From the NCBI GenBank assembly GCA_020891255.1, contig BQFW01000007.1, forward strand, positions 1,240,001 to 1,304,000: a stretch of 64,000 nucleotides of DNA. The letters are read 5' to 3'. Made by a program: the position numbers and the translations under genes. This document shows, piece after piece, positions 3,177 to 25,915 of the stretch; within the stretch, counting starts at the first letter, position 1, and every line of letters begins with the position of its first letter. The notes beneath the pieces are model-generated. The model saw only the letters and a program-made list of their open reading frames with translations. It was not told where the DNA came from and did no database searches. The stretch comes from Entomortierella parvispora E1425 (Eukaryota > Fungi > Mortierellomycota).

Positions 3177-4516
<1,340 letters not shown>

Positions 4517-5473: not shown

Positions 5474-9959
<4,486 letters not shown>

Positions 9960-10216
9960 GCATCAAATACATAGCAACGAGCAAAAAAAAAATATCGCTT
10001 TCTCTTGATTTTGGTTAGAGTTGGAGAGACATGTCGATCCGGGAGGTCACCCACAGAGTTTGCCCTTGGGCTAAACCACCTTTGTCCCCCTGGATGACCA
10101 CCACCTCCTTGTCGACACAAAATCCTTTTTTTATTTTTTATTTTTTTTTATTTCACTTTCTCGCAGATCTTTGCAGCACTTTCCCATTTTCTTGGAAATA
10201 CCTCCGTCCAAACAAG

Positions 10217-11503
10217 ATGGCCAAGTCCCAGTTTCATCACTACATCCCACGCTTCATTCTGAAGACATTCTCAGACGACTTTACACTTGATTCAACAGAC
10301 TGCAAGTACTTCGCCTCTATCTCGACTGAAGACAAAGGCGATGGCAAAGGCAAAGGCAAAGGCAACCGCAAAGGCAAAGTCAAAGGCAGAGGCAAAGTCA
10401 AAGGTGCAAGCAGCAAGAGCAACAAAAGCAACAGAGGAACGGCACAGTCAAACAACCACTACATCAAAGTCTACCAGGTGCAAAGTCGCACCACTGTCCT
10501 AACCGACATCGGACGCGCTTTTGGTGTGGTGAACCTCTACCGGGAGGAAGCCGAAGAGGATTGCATGAAGTTTGAGAGGCTGCTCAGCGTTTTTGAAGGA
10601 GAGTCGTCTACGTTTATCCGTCGAATCTGGACTGGCGAAGACCTTTCTTTGACTCGAGCCCAGTTGGAAAGGATGAAGAAGTTTCTGATCATCATGATGT
10701 ACCGCAGCGAGAGCCGCAGAGACCAGTACAACAAAGAGGATTATGATATAGAAGTTGCCATCTCGGCTCGAAAACATGCGAGCCATCACAGCATCGCAAG
10801 AATTCGCGACATCTGGTTCAAGAACCTCCAATGGCTCATTGAAACCCCTCTGAGCGACCTCATGAAGGAGTACAACAAGGTTTTGGAGATGGTGATGACA
10901 CGGCCTCTGACAGACCAGGGCGACCTTAAATGGCCTATACATATCTGTGAGCTGAAGGAGTTTGGTGTTATGGCAGAAAACTATATGTGTATCTGGGAAG
11001 CTGAGGAAGGAACAGAGTTCATCTTGTCTGAGGGTGGCTTTGGTGCGTGGGAAGGAGACAAAGGAGTCAAGTTTCACAACATCTTTGTGGTTTCTCCAAG
11101 ATACGCCATCGTTCTCGTCCTTCGAAGTTACATGTTCGGAATGACATTCGGCAGCTTGAGAAAGTCCTACTTTGGCGAGAAGCTCCATGCCAATCCAGAG
11201 ACTGTCTACGTGAAGGGACATCCGCCAGAAGATTTCACAGCCGAGAGTCATTTTACCCCAAGCGACATCTTCAAGTACAAGAGAATCAAGGTTCCAAAGT
11301 CGGACGTTTTTTTCGTCAATTGTATCTTTCTTGATGCCCGAGACAAGCATTTGACGTATAGATCCCCTATCTCGATGCTCAAGTCCTTGAAATATTATGA
11401 CATGGTCAAGGAAGAGAGATTCACATTCCAACACGATTACACTGCCCTGAAACGCGAGTTGTTTGCCGATCTAAACCGAACCCACCGTCCCGAGGAGCGG
11501 TAG
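10217..11503 (+). CDS. DUF4238-family protein, copy 1 (intronless, about 428 aa)
   Basis: N-terminal SQFHHYIPRFILKTF matches the DUF4238 HHY(V/I)P..(Y/F)L..F signature. EFILSE...VSPRYAIVL corresponds to the family F.TSD.P...PLSP motif. Uninterrupted ORF; ATG 10217 in context CAAGATG. Family assigned from motif recall, not from an HMM run. Confidence 0.8.
   Translation: MAKSQFHHYIPRFILKTFSDDFTLDSTDCKYFASISTEDKGDGKGKGKGNRKGKVKGRGKVKGASSKSNKSNRGTAQSNNHYIKVYQVQSRTTVLTDIGRAFGVVNLYREEAEEDCMKFERLLSVFEGESSTFIRRIWTGEDLSLTRAQLERMKKFLIIMMYRSESRRDQYNKEDYDIEVAISARKHASHHSIARIRDIWFKNLQWLIETPLSDLMKEYNKVLEMVMTRPLTDQGDLKWPIHICELKEFGVMAENYMCIWEAEEGTEFILSEGGFGAWEGDKGVKFHNIFVVSPRYAIVLVLRSYMFGMTFGSLRKSYFGEKLHANPETVYVKGHPPEDFTAESHFTPSDIFKYKRIKVPKSDVFFVNCIFLDARDKHLTYRSPISMLKSLKYYDMVKEERFTFQHDYTALKRELFADLNRTHRPEER
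10333..10404 (+). repeat. Imperfect (AAAGGC)n hexamer tandem repeat encoding a Lys-Gly tract inside DUF4238 copy 1
   Basis: caaaggcgatggcaaaggcaaaggcaaaggcaaccgcaaaggcaaagtcaaaggcagaggcaaagtcaaagg encodes KGDGKGKGKGNRKGKVKGRGKVKG. Confidence 0.8.
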
Positions 11504-11774
11504 CCTCTTTGCTGTTTTGTTGGTCCTGTCTCCATGTTCATAAGTCCAAGTTGGATCTGCTGTGTTTTGTGGTGTGGCAATTGCAAAAAAAAAAAAAAAA
11601 AAAACCTTTTCCACATCTACATCAACAAAAGTGTTTTTTGATTGTGGCACAAATTGGACATTTTGCATGAATGATGCACAATGCAGGTCCTGCCACACAT
11701 CATTGTCTTTTTTTTCTTTGTCACTTGCTTTTCTACTTTTCCTTTCCGCTTTCAACTGTCACCATATTACCAAG

Positions 11775-13073
11775 ATGCTGAAGAGCCAATTCCATCACTA
11801 TATCCCGCGCTTCATTCTAAAGACGTTTTCCGACAACTTTGCACTCACAGCCGTCGACAGCGAGTTCTTTGCCACACCTAAGGATCTGTTGAAGACGTCG
11901 GATCTTTCGAAAGAGCAGCTGGTCGACTTGGGTAGAGTCAAAACTAAGGCCAAGAAGAAGAAAGGAAAAAACAAAGGGGCGACACGACCTTTAGGGCAAC
12001 AGAGTCATCACATCAACGTTTACCATATAGAGAATCGCACCACTGTTCAAAGCGATGTGGCGCGAGCGTACGGTATCGACGATATGTACCGTGATATCTC
12101 TGAGGAGGACTGCATGAAGTTTGAAAAGCTGCTTGCCCAACTGGAGTGTGTCGCTTCTAATTTTATTCGTAAAATTTGGAATGGGAGCGACCTTTCGATG
12201 ACCCGTACGGAGCTGCAGGATATGAAGAAGTTCCTGGCCATCATGATGTACCGTGGTCCAAACCGCCGGGGTCAGTACTACAACGTGATGTTTGATCAAG
12301 TGACATTTGCCACAATTCGAATGCATATGGTCCACAACAACATCAGGAGGATCCAGGATGTCTGGTTCGAAAATCTCAAATGGCTCATCAAAACACCCTT
12401 CCAGGAGATCATGGACGAAGCTGAAAGAGCAAAAAGCGTTGCTACAGAGGTTAGAGCTAAGAACGGAGCGAGAGGGAACAGCCTTAAGGAGATGAGACAA
12501 TACCAGGGACCGATCCATGTCGCAGAACTGTTGGATTTCTATCATCAAATGACATTCTACGTCTGTATCTGGGAGGCTGAGGAAGGGTCCGAGTTCATCT
12601 TGTCTGAAAGTTGCTTTGGTTCGTTTGAGGGGGATGGGGGTGTTTGCTTCCACAACTTTTTTGTCGTCTCTCCAAGATACGCGATCGTTCTCGTTAGAAG
12701 AGATTACATGTATGGGACAATGGACACGTTGCCATTGCGGAAATCGTGGTTCAGCGAGAGCCTCCATGCCAATCCAGAGACTGTCTATGTGAAGGGACCT
12801 CCGCTCAGGAACTTCACAGTCGAGAGTCATTATACCCCAAACGACATCTTCAAGTATACGAGGATCAAGGTCCCAAAGCAAGATGTTTTTCTCGTGAATA
12901 GTATCTTTCTCGATGCCCGGCGCAAGTTTTTGACCTACAAGTCCAGCGCTTCCATGCTCAAGTGTCTTCGATTTTATGACAAGGTCAAACACGACAAGTT
13001 CCTCTATAAATATGACTACTCTATTCTCAAGCGCCAACTGTTTAACGACCTGAACAGGACCCACAGTTCTTGA
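11775..13073 (+). CDS. DUF4238-family protein, copy 2 (intronless tandem paralogue, about 432 aa)
   Basis: MLKSQFHHYIPRFILKTFSD start. Shares EEDCMKFE.LL, WF.NL.WLI.TP, CIWEAEEG.EFILSE, VVSPRYAIVL, LHANPETVYVKG and LF.DLNRTH with copy 1. Confidence 0.8.
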   Translation: MLKSQFHHYIPRFILKTFSDNFALTAVDSEFFATPKDLLKTSDLSKEQLVDLGRVKTKAKKKKGKNKGATRPLGQQSHHINVYHIENRTTVQSDVARAYGIDDMYRDISEEDCMKFEKLLAQLECVASNFIRKIWNGSDLSMTRTELQDMKKFLAIMMYRGPNRRGQYYNVMFDQVTFATIRMHMVHNNIRRIQDVWFENLKWLIKTPFQEIMDEAERAKSVATEVRAKNGARGNSLKEMRQYQGPIHVAELLDFYHQMTFYVCIWEAEEGSEFILSESCFGSFEGDGGVCFHNFFVVSPRYAIVLVRRDYMYGTMDTLPLRKSWFSESLHANPETVYVKGPPLRNFTVESHYTPNDIFKYTRIKVPKQDVFLVNSIFLDARRKFLTYKSSASMLKCLRFYDKVKHDKFLYKYDYSILKRQLFNDLNRTHSS

Positions 13074-13712
13074 AACTTGACCAGACCAGCATTGTCCCCT
13101 CCCTGCAAGAGGCATCGTTTATCTGCCCTAGTCGGAAAAAAAAATCAAAAATAAACGATCGCCTTGCTCATTGTTTTTGTTCTGCAGGTCTCATTGAGCT
13201 CTGCTTCGCCATGCAGGAGTTGTACAAAAGGTGAGAGGGAATTTTGAAGTACCAGGGGCAAAGAAGTTGCGTTATGGTTTGCTTTTTCCGTGAAAGGGAC
13301 AATAACGAAGGCAAAGCTTCTGGTCTCTTTGCACAGCATGTCGCATCATGCAAGCAACCATGTTCTCTTTTGTGAGCTTCATTGGCAAATGTACATTCTC
13401 GACTCAAGGGTAAACGGGCAATGGAATAGATGCAGGGCATCTTCATGCCTTGGATTAGCAAGTACAGTGAAGGAGAGATCGGACGGGCACAGGGCGCAGG
13501 TTTCTTCATCTATTGAGCATATAACTTCATGCCGGACACATCGTTGACGCGTCAGTCAGCCCCTTGAGGTGCCAGTTGCGGCACGTTTAACTCATCGCTC
13601 GTTGACAAGCAGCCAATTCCATGTTTTTTCCTTTGATCGAAAGAACGTCAATGTACTGAGTGGCCTTCTTTATTTTTACTTTTTTTTTGTGATGGGGGGC
13701 ACTGGGCATGGT

Positions 13713-15743
13713 TTAGAAATTAGAGTCTGCGGTCGTCTCCTCATCGTCCATGGATGTTCTCTTGGAAAGCTCACTCAAGATGCCCTCAAAATCGGCAATC
13801 TTCCTAGTCAAGTCGGTACGCTTTTTCTTGAGCGCGGGGGACTCCAGCATGTCCACCAAATCATTGTCCGTGGCATTGTGTAGCATATCAGAATACATGT
13901 TGATTCTCTTGACCATGTGGCGTTCAATGGTCTCCACCACAACCTTATCAACAATACGCTCCCTGGCGGTCTTGAGATACGCTAGAAAACAGGGAATCAT
14001 CTCGTCGGTTGTGTGATACTCATTCCACTCCCCAGTCTTCTTTGAAGGGTTGAGGGACTTGAACAATCCTCTTGAGGGCTTTGGGGAGCTCCCTGAGGAA
14101 GGTGGAGAGTCTGAGCCGTGTTCATTGTCGTCTTCGCGGATGCGCGACTCGCTTGCAACTGTAGGAATATCGTTCCTCTTGGGGCGCTCTTTGGCAACCT
14201 CGGAATCGTAGTATCGGTTGAGTGTGAAGGGTGTTTCCTCATCAGAAAAGATGTCTGACAGAGTCTGATTGATGCTCTCTGTCTGTTGGCTGTAGAACCG
14301 ACCAAAAATTCGAATGCAAACGTCCTTGGCTGCAGGATTGGCGGCGCCTTCAATGAAGGTTTTGAGGGCCTCGGCGAGGAGTCCATGCATTTCGGCCACA
14401 CGCGTCCTGCTGAGCCTCCTCCAAACGATCATAAAATTGCTGTTGATCACATTCTTGAAGACAATGGGCGAGACCATGCCATTAAGATCGTTTCCTTTGA
14501 GGAGAGCGACCTGCTTCATGATCTCGGGCCTCTGCAGCCGATTGCATTCTTCTTCCATAGCATCTCTGTAGTCGTGATACATTCTACCGAGTGCGGACCG
14601 GACAAAGAGGATATCCGCCTTTCCAAGATTCTCCTTGCCCTTGTGCAACTCCAGATAGTCCAGTTCATAGTCGGCCCTGAGGAAGGCCTCCATCTTTGAC
14701 ATCAGGGTCCTTGACGTGCCGCGGAGCTTATCGCGTGCTTCTTCAATGCTCAAAATTGGATTGCCCATGTCTTCAACGTTCTTCTTGTATGATCTCAGTG
14801 CGTTATCGACCTCCAGTTTCAGAGCGGGAAGTTCCCTGCTGATGTGCTCCTGCAGCACTGCCCCCAAGAAAGTTCTGGCGGCCTCACGGCCCTTACGTTC
14901 AGGCAGGACGGCATTCCACTGGCTGGACGAGAAGAACTCTTGTTCTTCCTGCTTGGCTCTCTCCCAGGACGAGTTTTTGTCTTCATAGCTTGTATTCCTC
15001 ATGACGAGGTATCCAAACTTCATGTGCTTGCGTCGATTGTTGATAGTCTTGATCCAATCCGAGTGTAAGCCTTGCTCAATTCGATCTGCTTTGGTGATAA
15101 TGGGGATTGTGCGATCTCCTGCAGGATCGTGCTCCGGCTTTCCGGCCATGGAAAGAGCTGTGGATGCGTTCAAGTCAACATCTGCCTGAACGACCGCAAG
15201 AATGATTGTTCTAGGGTCTCGAAGATATTGGTTGTTGATCCTCCAAATGGTGTCGGGGAGAGCCTTGTCCTGGTCATCCAAGGTTGTTCTGATGAAGCCA
15301 GGAAGGTCGATGATTGTCAGGGGAGACTGACCCGGGCCTGACACGGTAATCTCAAGCACTTTCTCAGACACGCCCTTCTCACCCTTCTCGTTATGACAAA
15401 GCGTCGCAACGGCATCCTTGATAACTGCGTGAAAGTACTCGGAAGTTGCTTCCTGCAACACTTTGCGGGCTTCATTAAACTTGTTCTCACCCTCAATCCT
15501 GGCAGAGAGCATATCCTTTTTCAAGGTTGTGTCTCGGCGCAGGTTGACCTGGGTTGCGAAGCGGGTACACATCCCCTTGTCTCGGGGAAACGACAACTTG
15601 GAGATTGCCTCGAGAACGCTCGACTTGCCGCTGGACTGGTCCCCGATAATTGCCATCTGGGGGATACTGAACTTGTGCGAAAGACCATGGCTTTGGATCT
15701 TATTGATCTTGTCAATGATCGTCTGATACCCGGATTCAAACAT
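13713..15743 (-). CDS. Dynamin-superfamily GTPase of Mx-like (non-Vps1/Dnm1) type, intronless, 676 aa
   Basis: G1 GDQSSGKS, G2 MCTRF, G3 DLPG and G4 TKAD; NTSYED motif region; helical middle domain; GED-like C-terminus (LESPALKKKRTDLTRKIADFEGILSEL). No PH domain or N-terminal targeting sequence is evident. Confidence 0.9.
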   Translation of the reverse strand: MFESGYQTIIDKINKIQSHGLSHKFSIPQMAIIGDQSSGKSSVLEAISKLSFPRDKGMCTRFATQVNLRRDTTLKKDMLSARIEGENKFNEARKVLQEATSEYFHAVIKDAVATLCHNEKGEKGVSEKVLEITVSGPGQSPLTIIDLPGFIRTTLDDQDKALPDTIWRINNQYLRDPRTIILAVVQADVDLNASTALSMAGKPEHDPAGDRTIPIITKADRIEQGLHSDWIKTINNRRKHMKFGYLVMRNTSYEDKNSSWERAKQEEQEFFSSSQWNAVLPERKGREAARTFLGAVLQEHISRELPALKLEVDNALRSYKKNVEDMGNPILSIEEARDKLRGTSRTLMSKMEAFLRADYELDYLELHKGKENLGKADILFVRSALGRMYHDYRDAMEEECNRLQRPEIMKQVALLKGNDLNGMVSPIVFKNVINSNFMIVWRRLSRTRVAEMHGLLAEALKTFIEGAANPAAKDVCIRIFGRFYSQQTESINQTLSDIFSDEETPFTLNRYYDSEVAKERPKRNDIPTVASESRIREDDNEHGSDSPPSSGSSPKPSRGLFKSLNPSKKTGEWNEYHTTDEMIPCFLAYLKTARERIVDKVVVETIERHMVKRINMYSDMLHNATDNDLVDMLESPALKKKRTDLTRKIADFEGILSELSKRTSMDDEETTADSNF

Positions 15744-17490: not shown

Positions 17491-19117
17491 ATGTCCGCAC
17501 CCACCCGGAGGACTTTGGTCTCCAGCGCACCTCTTGTCCTCGTCGGTACCCTTTCTTTCCTCGTCTTTAGTCTCGATGCCGCCTTTTCCGTTTCCTTTGT
17601 CTACCAAGATCAACTTACCATGCCCCAGTTTGGCGTGCGATACCTTCACGATCTCATCCCAGCTTCAGATCTGCATCCTAAGCATGGATATACCGTCATG
17701 ACTGGACCCTTAGGACGACACTGGGCATGTACCATACCCACCGTACCTGCAGAGATCGTGCAGGACTCGATCGCCAGATCTAGCAAAGTCATGGAGCAAG
17801 AAGATCGCGAGAACATCCAGCGTGGGCTCACTTTGATTGAACCCTTGTCTCAAGCCTGTATTCGGAGGGTAAGTCGGGTATTCCATTGATTCCAAGGGCA
17901 AAAACACCAAGTATCTTTTAATGAAACGTATTTGTCTCCTTGATCATCTCTCTAGACTTTTGACTGGTGGACCTATGAGTTTTGTTACAAAAGCAGGATC
18001 AGACAATATCATGCCATCAAAGTTGGAGGAAACTGGGTACCAGAGAGCAGCGACAGCACGTTTGTCCTGGCCAACTATCAGTCCAGCTCAGAAGAGGCAA
18101 CAGTCGACGATCCAACCCGAGTCCAACTAAATGGAGGGTCATCGTCTCCAGGGTCCAAGCAACACGGAACCTTGCAAACAACATTTTTGGAAAGCCATCA
18201 CGATCGGGTAGTGCTTGTCCAACTGTGGGAGTCGGGCGATATCTGTCCAGAGACGGATCTTCCCAGGACTGTTGAAGTGCAGGTAAAAAAAAAAAAAAAA
18301 ATAGATCAAGAATGTAATTTTGTGCAAGGGTGCTGACACAGCTGCTTCTCCTCCTATTTCCGGTCCATCGCAGTATCACTGCGCACAGGCTTTCCACGAC
18401 CGTATCCATTCCGTCACAGAGCCATCAATCTGCAATTACCTGATGATTGTCAACGTACCAGCGCTCTGTCGTGACCCTGCTTTTGCAATCCAGCTTGCGC
18501 CAGAGGTTCAAGAGATCAAGTGTCGACGGATAGCAACGGAGAGCGAGATCAGACAAGTGGAGGCGGACGCCAGTGATGCTCATGTAGAAGAGAATGCAGC
18601 TCATACAGTAAGCATGGAGGATCAATTGAGACTTTTATACAGCAAGGACCTAGGTCGACCAAAGCACTTTAGAGACGTATTAGAAGGCATCCGACATTAC
18701 GCACAAGCTTGGGAACCGCGGCTGACAGAATCCCAGCAGCAGTTGCTGAAACGAGTGGAGGCGCATGGAGGAATTATCGTTGGTGGAGGTGCTGGAGTTC
18801 AAAGGAACCGAAAACCAAAGGAGGTCATAGAACAAGAGAGACAGGAGAGGCTGCAAGTGGCACAGATGTTTAGAGATTCGTTTGGAGAGCAGCCCGTACA
18901 GCATCGTACAGGCCGAACGCGATTCGATGGGGCAGCCAACCTTGGACAAAGTGGCGAGAATGGTGTGGGCACAGGACCCAGCAGCAGCGGGGGAGGGAGA
19001 TCAAGAGCGAGTATAAGTGAGATGGATTTGGAAGAGTTGATAGAATTGTTGGAGAGTACAGAAGAAGAACTGGAGGAGCGACTGAAAGGAAATTCAAGAG
19101 ACAAGCGGAAAGTATGA
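17491..19117 (+). CDS. YOS9: OS-9/Yos9 ERAD lectin (MRH/PRKCSH domain), 3 exons
   Basis: N-terminal hydrophobic signal; LIEPLSQACI|..DWWTYEFCYKSRIRQYH; QLWESGDICPETDLPRTVEVQ|YHC; DRIHSVTEPSICNYLMIVNVPALC. Introns start GTAAGT at about 17868 and GTAAAA at about 18283. Confidence 0.85.
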
Positions 19118-24177: not shown

Positions 24178-25915
24178 ATGGCCGCCAACCAACAACCACA
24201 TATGGCGTAAGTAGCTGCCAATGTCTCTTTGTTTCCAATGGCCGAGTCTGCTAGAGAGAAGGAGAGTAGAGTACAAAGAATAACCATCGTTGAACTCTTG
24301 TTGCCTTAGACACGAAAACGACAACTGGAAGAAGCAACTCAATCTCCCCACTAAAGACTCCCGCCCTCAAACTGAGGTAAAAACCAGTGGTGTTTTTTTT
24401 GGTTCTTTTTTCATCGTCTTTACATGTGGAATACCATGGACTCAACCCGATCGTTCTCTTCTTGCTTTGATAGGACGTTACTGCCACCAAGGGAAATGAG
24501 TTTGAAGATTACTTTCTCAAGCGCGAGCTCTTGATGGGTATCTTCGAAGCCGGCTTCGAGCGCCCGTCTCCCATCCAGGAAGAATCCATACCTATTGCCC
24601 TTGCTGGAAGGGATATTCTTGCCCGTGCAAAGAACGGTACCGGAAAGACCGCTGCCTTCGTCATCCCCTCACTCGAAAAGATCAACCTCAAGAAGAACAA
24701 GGTCCAGGCTCTGCTCTTGGTTCCCACCCGTGAGCTTGCTCTCCAGACCGCGCAGGTCTGCAAGACTCTGGGAAAGCACATGGGCGTCCAGGTCATGGTC
24801 ACCACAGGAGGCACCACCCTCAAGGACGACATCATGCGTCTTGCCGAGACTGTTCACATTATCGTCGGAACTCCCGGCCGTATTCTCGATCTTGCAGGAA
24901 AGGGCGTCGCCAACTTTAGCGAGTGCACAACCTTTGTCATGGATGAGGCTGACAAACTTCTCAGTCCAGAGTTCACACCTATTGTCGAGCAGCTGCTGAC
25001 ATACTTCCCCAAGCAGCGCCAGATCATGCTCTACTCTGCTACTTTCCCTTTGATTGTCAAGACTTTCAAGGACAAGCACATGGTGAAGCCTTACGAGATC
25101 AATCTGATGGACGAGCTCACTCTTCGCGGTGTCACCCAGTACTATGCCTTTGTGGAGGAACGCCAAAAAGTTCACTGCCTCAACACCCTTTTTTCCAAGG
25201 TAAGGCGGGTTCTACGACCTGGAAAGCTGTCCTCTCTTGTCAGAATAGTGCTAATGTTTCTTTATTTTTATTGAATCCTCTCTAGCTTCAAATCAACCAA
25301 TCTATCATCTTCTGCAATTCAACCAACCGTGTGGAATTGCTGGCTAAAAAGATCACGGAGCTGGGATATTCATGCTTCTACTCACACGCAAAGATGCTCC
25401 AGTCCCACCGTAACAGAGTCTTCCACGATTTCAGGAACGGTGTCTGCAGAAACTTGGTCTGCTCCGATTTGCTGACTCGTGGTATCGATATCCAGGCCGT
25501 CAACGTCGTTATCAACTTTGACTTTCCCAAAAATGCCGAGACCTATCTCCATCGTATCGGTCGTAGTGGTCGCTTTGGTCACTTGGGTTTGGCCATCAAC
25601 TTAATCACATACGAGGATCGCTTCAATCTCTACAAGATCGAGCAGGAGCTTGGAACTGAAATTCAGGCCATCCCCCCAGTTATTGACAAGCGCCTTTACG
25701 TTGCACCTTCTGCCTTGGATGCCGAGCAGCACCAGGAAGCACAGAACCACCACGAGGAGCAGCAAAAGCTTCACCACCAACAGCAGCAGCAACATCAGCA
25801 GCAACATCAGCACCGTCAGCAGCAGCAGATTGCCCACCACCAAGGTGGTCACCAGTACCCCCATCAGCAGCAGCATGGCCAGTTTCAGCAGCATGCGCAA
25901 AACGTCCGCCGATAA
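24178..25915 (+). CDS. DHH1: DEAD-box RNA helicase Dhh1/DDX6 with Gln/His-rich C-terminal tail
   Basis: [92 protein letters not shown] 24178 is followed by short exons. Confidence 0.97.

Follow-up and report, generated by a model that had tools for sequence, protein, structure and literature searches.

Two DUF4238 genes beside an Mx-like dynamin in the fungus Entomortierella parvispora: defence island or chance neighbourhood?

Introduction

When genes of two families with immune members lie side by side in a fungal chromosome, do they form a defence island, or have they come to adjoin by accident? The question is raised by a 64,000-nucleotide stretch of contig BQFW01000007.1 of Entomortierella parvispora E1425 (Mortierellomycota; assembly GCA_020891255.1, forward-strand positions 1,240,001 to 1,304,000), called the window in the following and numbered from its first letter. 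At positions 10217-15743 it contains three uninterrupted, intronless open reading frames (ORFs), namely two genes of the DUF4238 family in tandem on the forward strand (DUF4238-1 and DUF4238-2) and, convergent to them on the reverse strand, a gene for an Mx-like dynamin. An earlier note on this DNA had taken the trio for a candidate innate-immunity island, possibly with a horizontally acquired or retroposed component.

Both families have been touched upon in the literature. An Escherichia coli prophage DUF4238 protein acts as a single-gene anti-phage system that blocks T7, by a mechanism that is not known, and represents the only functional datum for the family (PMC9122126). Mx-like dynamins of fungi have been described as MxF1 and MxF2 and are present in Mucoromycota (Langley et al., PNAS 2025, PMC11789081); surveyed fungal genomes carry 0-5 copies, with a turnover that suggests arms races, and the function of these proteins is not known (PMC11789081).

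In the following, the distribution of the adjacency, the selection acting on the three genes and the history of each family are considered in turn. The interpretation that we favour, with moderate confidence, is that the window holds three independent functional genes of two fungal families with fast turnover, their adjacency being a lineage-specific accident of gene order.

Comparative test of the island

The island was tested on a sample of places rather than by a genome-wide statistic. The sample comprised 12 other stretches, corresponding to about 10 separate places, seven of them in other genera and three in the E. parvispora genome itself. Both families occurred together in none of the 12, and the adjacency is shared only by three syntenic contigs from close relatives, two of them from metagenomes (L007 and L008) and one from a Logan assembly (L010). 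In particular, tblastn revealed no dynamin gene within about 4-10 kb of the DUF4238 genes of Linnemannia zychae, L. gamsii, Lobosporangium, Mortierella alpina and Armillaria, or of the DUF4238 arrays of E. chlamydospora (four copies) and Benniella (five copies). The E. parvispora genome contains three DUF4238 copies in all, two at the locus and a broken one on contig C14, and the roughly 4-5 kb to each side of the latter (L015:5541-6746) gave no tblastn match to the dynamin. The same genome encodes four Mx-like dynamin paralogues at three places (the locus, a single copy on C13 and two copies in tandem on C1); no DUF4238 gene was found by tblastn near the C13 and C1 paralogues, or near the closest orthologues of the window dynamin (56% identity) in Dissophora and Mortierella sp. 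GBA30.

An innate-immunity island is, therefore, not supported by the comparative evidence, the adjacency being confined to close relatives and absent from the approximately 10 other places. The earlier note had named an adjacency unique to this genome, without enrichment elsewhere, among the findings that would refute the island, and on this point the result goes against the island, although the three close-relative contigs do share the arrangement. As dozens of Mortierellaceae lineages carry multiple copies of such genes, and many candidate immune-like pairs can be formed, a single juxtaposition of this kind would be unremarkable.

Conservation and selection in close relatives

The order Ire1, DUF4238-1, DUF4238-2, dynamin is kept in all three contigs, which share with the window 75-83% of nucleotides and 65-76% of amino acids, each DUF4238 copy being one-to-one orthologous (the DUF4238-1 orthologues of L007 and L010 show 65-70% amino acid identity). 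Against these relatives, the pairwise ratio of non-synonymous to synonymous substitution rates (dN/dS), a measure that cannot detect site-specific positive selection, is 0.14-0.25 for DUF4238-1, 0.16-0.26 for DUF4238-2 and 0.17 overall for the dynamin, with 0.11 in its G domain and 0.34 in its GED. For comparison, the kinase/RNase half of Ire1 gives 0.07 and its lumenal half 0.27. Judged by these rates, which are nowhere elevated, purifying selection acts on all three genes, which are functional.

One in-frame TGA interrupts the dynamin gene of the nearest relative (L007:1555-3582; L008:1498-3525), at codon 54, which codes for Arg in the window and lies just after the P-loop; the remainder of the gene's 675 codons is open. 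L007 and L008 come from different studies and differ by 3 mismatches in 6165 bases, and both DUF4238 genes are intact in each. The DUF4238 genes have thus been retained where the dynamin is broken, and the stop suggests a recent pseudogene or a polymorphism.

These data bear on the possibility that the trio is a co-regulated or cooperating defence module directed against mycoviruses, endobacteria or non-self, which we consider unlikely. Mortierellaceae commonly host endobacteria, a circumstance that counts in favour of such a module, as do the conservation of the order in three related taxa with intact DUF4238 genes and the low a priori probability of the adjacency in this genome. Furthermore, E. 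coli gains protection from T7 through one of the bacterial DUF4238 proteins (PMC9122126), and the turnover of fungal MxF resembles an arms race (PMC11789081). Antiviral activity is a property of Mx proteins. However, the two families never met at some 10 other places, among seven other genera and the paralogues of the same genome, and in the nearest relative intact DUF4238 genes stand next to a dynamin with a nonsense codon. In addition, the upstream regions lack a common motif (no 8-mer, nor any word of 8-10 nucleotides, was found to be common to those of all three genes), the PADLOC model for the anti-phage subfamily does not recognize the window DUF4238 proteins, and dN/dS is not elevated.

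The interpretation as an accident of gene order has, in turn, to face several points that weigh against it. The arrangement has outlasted substantial divergence, with dS (synonymous divergence) of 0.5-1.3. The dynamin stop in the relative could be a strain polymorphism. The comparison covered about 10 separate other places, not whole genomes. Finally, the chance of finding the two families adjacent in this one genome is roughly 1e-3, an estimate based on 2 DUF4238 places, 3 Mx-like places and 38.9 Mb, uncorrected for the many other family pairs and windows that could have been chosen. A young functional association between DUF4238 and dynamin at this locus may exist.

The DUF4238 family and its origin

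Both tandem ORFs were assigned to DUF4238 in the earlier note, and both match Pfam PF14022 well above its gathering cut-off of 27 bits, i.e. they pass the curated score (table 1). The two proteins are 53% identical over their full length (BLASTP). From their ATG starts, at 10217 and 11775, each reads into an N-terminal HHYIP motif, which in DUF4238-1 is followed by a disordered Lys/Gly-rich insert.

With the limit set at E ≤ 1e-3, a profile search of 1.84 billion representative sequences gave 980 clusters, and 337 remained at E ≤ 1e-30. The close homologues of the locus genes are all from Mortierellaceae, and, when matches outside this family were sampled, 10 out of 10 were fungal (from Paraphysoderma, Scutellospora, Armillaria, Athelia, Hypsizygus, Candolleomyces, Crassisporium, Tricharina and Peziza), adding four phyla, i.e. 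at least five with Mortierellomycota. When 25 fungal and 10 bacterial DUF4238 proteins were placed in one tree, the fungal sequences formed a single clade on a long stem, with a support of 98 in the Shimodaira-Hasegawa-like approximate likelihood ratio test (SH-aLRT), and the inner branching of this clade broadly tracks the fungal phyla. Among bacteria, the Pfam model found DUF4238 in 27 of 401 sampled Pseudomonadota genomes. The PADLOC model PDLC03000 ('DUF4238-Pers') matches 4 of 9 bacterial DUF4238 proteins, with E down to 1e-48; neither window DUF4238 protein matched a PADLOC model at E ≤ 0.01, and the fungal clade is not nearest to the PADLOC-positive bacterial subgroup in the tree. As far as these sequences tell, DUF4238 is an old and large fungal family rather than a stray bacterial gene, and any transfer must have been older than the split of the major fungal phyla.

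A recent origin of the two genes, either by horizontal acquisition from a bacterium (e.g. an endosymbiont) or as retrocopies inserted beside the dynamin, is accordingly a highly improbable explanation, which can be regarded as largely refuted. It would account for intronless genes in an intron-containing genome, and for a family that in Pfam is mainly bacterial and also occurs in Pseudomonadota. Nevertheless, the nearest relatives are all fungal and fall on one fungal branch that broadly follows the phyla. A motif scan with the fungal alignment over 185,579 bacterial and archaeal species genomes gave 139 pattern matches, of which 0 were confirmed, and tblastn with DUF4238-2 gave no match in phage and plasmid collections. 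The G+C content of the locus, 0.45-0.47, equals that of the flanks; no poly-A remnants or flanking repeats were found at the locus as marks of insertion, nor did a repeat search find repeats or transposon ends bounding it. In Armillaria, the called DUF4238 gene does not translate directly to its protein, so that this member appears to have gained an intron. The clade of fungal sequences alone, the G+C content and the lack of a BLAST-level relative among prokaryotes, phages and plasmids, taken together, do not support the recently acquired or retroposed component that the earlier note had envisaged.

In the literature searched, judged mostly by titles, no description of a fungal DUF4238 family was found, and the family appears to be undescribed there. 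Fungal Mx-like dynamins had already been published (PMC11789081).

Several features of DUF4238 genes were observed along the way. The similarity between the two window copies starts 37 nucleotides before each ATG (10180-10287 versus 11738-11845; 71% identity), indicating that part of the 5' leader was duplicated along with the gene and is still recognizable. Away from the Ire1 locus, tandem arrays of five copies are present in Benniella sp. (L019:10001-18630) and of four in E. chlamydospora (L011:5856-13052), and in Athelia sp. TMB the locus tags of two copies, HWV62_19991 and 19993, nearly adjoin. The third E. parvispora copy (C14:1535558-1536607) is interrupted by one TAA and annotated as a 237-residue fragment, EMPS_10458. 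In Lobosporangium transversale (L003:593-16215), the neighbours of the DUF4238 gene are three Zn_ribbon_3CxxC genes and a gene for a 1825-residue AAA_11/AAA_12 (Upf1/Sen1-like) helicase. In M. alpina, a convergent gene for a 224-residue GmrSD_C (DUF1524-type nuclease) protein, with a hydrophobic, signal-peptide-like N-terminal stretch, directly follows DUF4238 (L018:11768-12442), and none is present in the window; a comparison with the small ORF that lies between the convergent window genes (13168-13509) showed the two to be unrelated.

Predicted fold and conserved residues

The AlphaFold2 (AF2) model of DUF4238-2 has a predicted local distance difference test score (pLDDT) of 85 and a predicted template modelling score (pTM) of 0.84; the segment that matches the Lys/Gly repeat of DUF4238-1 falls below 50 in pLDDT. 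A structure-based search with the model matched an ESM Atlas cluster of bacterial DUF4238 models with a template modelling (TM) score of 0.88 by target, over 262 residues and with a root-mean-square deviation of 2.5, so that the predicted fold is common to the fungal and bacterial proteins. No solved relative was found by sequence (phmmer against solved structures), by Foldseek in PDB at E ≤ 0.001, or in a wide VIA-align structure search, whose best Z was 4.5. A likeness to OTU-type proteases in Foldseek rows with E of 1-4 was considered and judged to be noise. The DUF4238 model also aligns to a cluster of 686-residue Basidiomycota proteins annotated as protein kinases (307 residues, TM 0.58 by query), which may be either a kinase-DUF4238-like fusion or a spurious helical match.

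When the 25 fungal and 10 bacterial sequences were compared column by column, H8, P11, L15, Y105, E117, E124, R160, S299, P300 and N375 proved to be the majority residue in both groups, with 60-100% per column. We infer that the polar residues of this set belong to a catalytic or ligand-binding site.

The Mx-like dynamin

The G1-G4 motifs are intact in the translation of the dynamin gene (GDQSSGKS, a conserved T60, DLPG and TKAD). The AF2 model (pLDDT 81) comprises a G domain, a BSE and a stalk of four helices; it lacks a PH domain, and residues 527-570 form a disordered loop. When all PDB sequences are ranked, Mx1 and Mx2 take the first nine places (113-131 bits, best E 4e-37); the best non-Mx match reaches 105 bits, and dynamin, Vps1, DRP1A and Drp1 follow at about this score or less (E ~4e-29 for dynamin, Vps1 and Drp1). 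The E. parvispora genome has a separate Mgm1 (573 bits to 6rzt) and a separate Dnm1. The Mx-like nature proposed in the earlier note is thus confirmed, and the protein fits the fungal MxF class, distinct from Vps1, Dnm1 and Mgm1, in a placement by similarity ranking, not by a tree. Since the full-length Foldseek matches of the model to dynamin 1, MxA, MxB and Drp1 are about equal (E ~1e-21), the fold cannot separate Mx from dynamin 1 or Drp1, and the assignment rests on sequence ranking and paralogy. A PADLOC scan of the protein returned no dynamin-type system, only weak P-loop matches to unrelated ATPase models.

Mortierellaceae are rich in MxF-type dynamins, at least seven being listed for one Linnemannia zychae assembly. 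The orthologous Mx-like dynamin of Dissophora ornata has, at a distance of about 7 kb, a gene with a Crinkler domain (PF20147; L012:14245-14571), a family linked with eukaryotic conflict systems.

Copy-number dynamics, tandem arrays and pseudogenes, as seen in both families, are typical of conflict or immune genes, and make an immune role plausible for each gene on its own. An opposite explanation, which we hold to be rather unlikely, denies any role in immunity: the DUF4238 proteins would be housekeeping or metabolic enzymes, the dynamin would remodel membranes or organelles, and the immune flavour would stem from distant-homology annotation. It agrees with purifying selection on all three genes near the level of the lumenal half of Ire1, with the ordinary genes that surround the trio, with the long branch that parts the fungal DUF4238 proteins from the bacterial ones, away from the PADLOC-positive subgroup, and with the lack of a known function for MxF and fungal DUF4238 proteins alike. 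Yet housekeeping enzymes rarely show arrays of 2-5 copies at differing places across genera, pseudogenes and patchy orthology; the MxF copy number of 0-5 (PMC11789081), exceeded in L. zychae, is equally out of character, and canonical Mgm1 and Dnm1 are already present in the genome.

Organization of the locus

The features of the locus are collected in table 1. The packing of three intronless ORFs amid intron-containing genes, as described in the earlier note, is found in the sequence: Ire1, directly upstream of the trio, is split by an intron (6914-8548 and 8567-9814), and so is a DEAD-box helicase gene farther downstream (24531-25274 and 25331-25915).

Table 1. Features of the locus in the window (strand and positions as in the text).
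Feature	Position	Strand	Description
DUF4238-1	10217..11503	+	428 aa, intronless; Pfam PF14022, E 5.9e-23, 82.1 bits
DUF4238-2	11775..13073	+	432 aa, intronless; Pfam PF14022, E 1.4e-26, 94.0 bits
Mx-like (MxF-type) dynamin	13713..15743	-	676 aa, intronless; Pfam PF00350 Dynamin_N and PF01031 Dynamin_M
Coding microsatellite, 12-nt and 6-nt AAAGGC-type units	10329..10406	+	encodes (KG)n of DUF4238-1; repeat search and translation
Ire1 (kinase and RNase 2-5A)	6914..9814	+	context only; Pfam Pkinase and Ribonuc_2-5A; housekeeping neighbour anchoring synteny

Long ORFs around the locus, at 1196-2764, 3324-4310, 5474-6193 and 18320-19117, gave no Pfam match at E ≤ 0.001, the last of them within the stretch of about 15.9-20 kb that adjoins the 5' end of the dynamin gene.

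Proposed functions and significance

If the three genes are independent, as we favour, the DUF4238 genes, old tandem paralogues of a fungal family, would encode proteins that are probably cytosolic and enzyme-like, with a fold that has no solved relative, and the HH-x-x-P motif, the Tyr, the two Glu, the Arg and the Asn common to fungi and bacteria would form their catalytic or ligand-binding site. The MxF-type dynamin, like other dynamins, would use GTP to assemble with itself into rings or helices that enclose a target, perhaps a viral or bacterial one or a membrane. As nothing points to a single module, the DUF4238 proteins and the dynamin would act separately.

A bolder proposal is that the fungal DUF4238 proteins descend from a bacterial anti-phage effector, having kept its active site and serving in innate immunity against mycoviruses or endobacteria, and that they form, with the Mx-like dynamin, a young two-family cluster in the E. 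parvispora lineage. We regard it as quite improbable; if true, the locus would be among the first examples of a eukaryotic 'defence island'. Likewise, a functional pairing would carry the defence-island principle over to fungi and provide a handle on two unstudied candidate immune families.

Overall, with the Mx-like dynamin class already published, the locus makes a modest descriptive addition, which lies in a fungal DUF4238 family with tandem arrays, an unsolved fold and a set of polar residues in common with a bacterial anti-phage protein. Both families are reasonable targets for tests of antiviral or anti-endobacterial immunity in fungi, as separate genes.

Comparison with known systems

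Among prokaryotic systems, the closest counterpart of the window DUF4238 proteins is Rst_DUF4238, the 'DUF4238-Pers' of PADLOC (Rousset et al. 2022, PMC9122126). The two have in common PF14022, the predicted fold, the HH-x-x-P motif, the Tyr, two Glu, Arg and Asn, and the nature of a single-domain protein without an obligatory partner gene. They differ in that the fungal proteins do not match PDLC03000, are about 100-150 residues longer owing to a disordered basic insert and a C-terminal helical extension, belong to a separate clade on a long branch and are encoded in a eukaryotic chromosome instead of a P2-like prophage hotspot.

With prokaryotic defence islands, and with Eleos/LeoBC and DynA, the locus shares the adjoining of two genes from families with immune members. 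Prokaryotic islands, however, are defined by a statistically recurrent co-localization over many genomes, which was not found for the window trio, and the window dynamin is of the eukaryotic Mx/dynamin type, with no dynamin-type match in PADLOC, in contrast to Eleos/LeoBC and DynA.

As for the Mx proteins, the whole-protein identity of the window dynamin to Mx is only about 18% (Foldseek), and 26-28% with respect to 'stalkless' G-domain/BSE constructs; moreover, unlike animal Mx, no MxF is known to be antiviral, and an interferon system is absent from fungi. On the other hand, the window dynamin resembles MxF (PMC11789081) and animal Mx1/Mx2 in the presence of a G domain, BSE and stalk, in a disordered loop at the place where dynamin has a PH domain, and in intact GTPase motifs, and the variable copy number, tandem duplicates and pseudogenized orthologue of its family match the turnover described for MxF.

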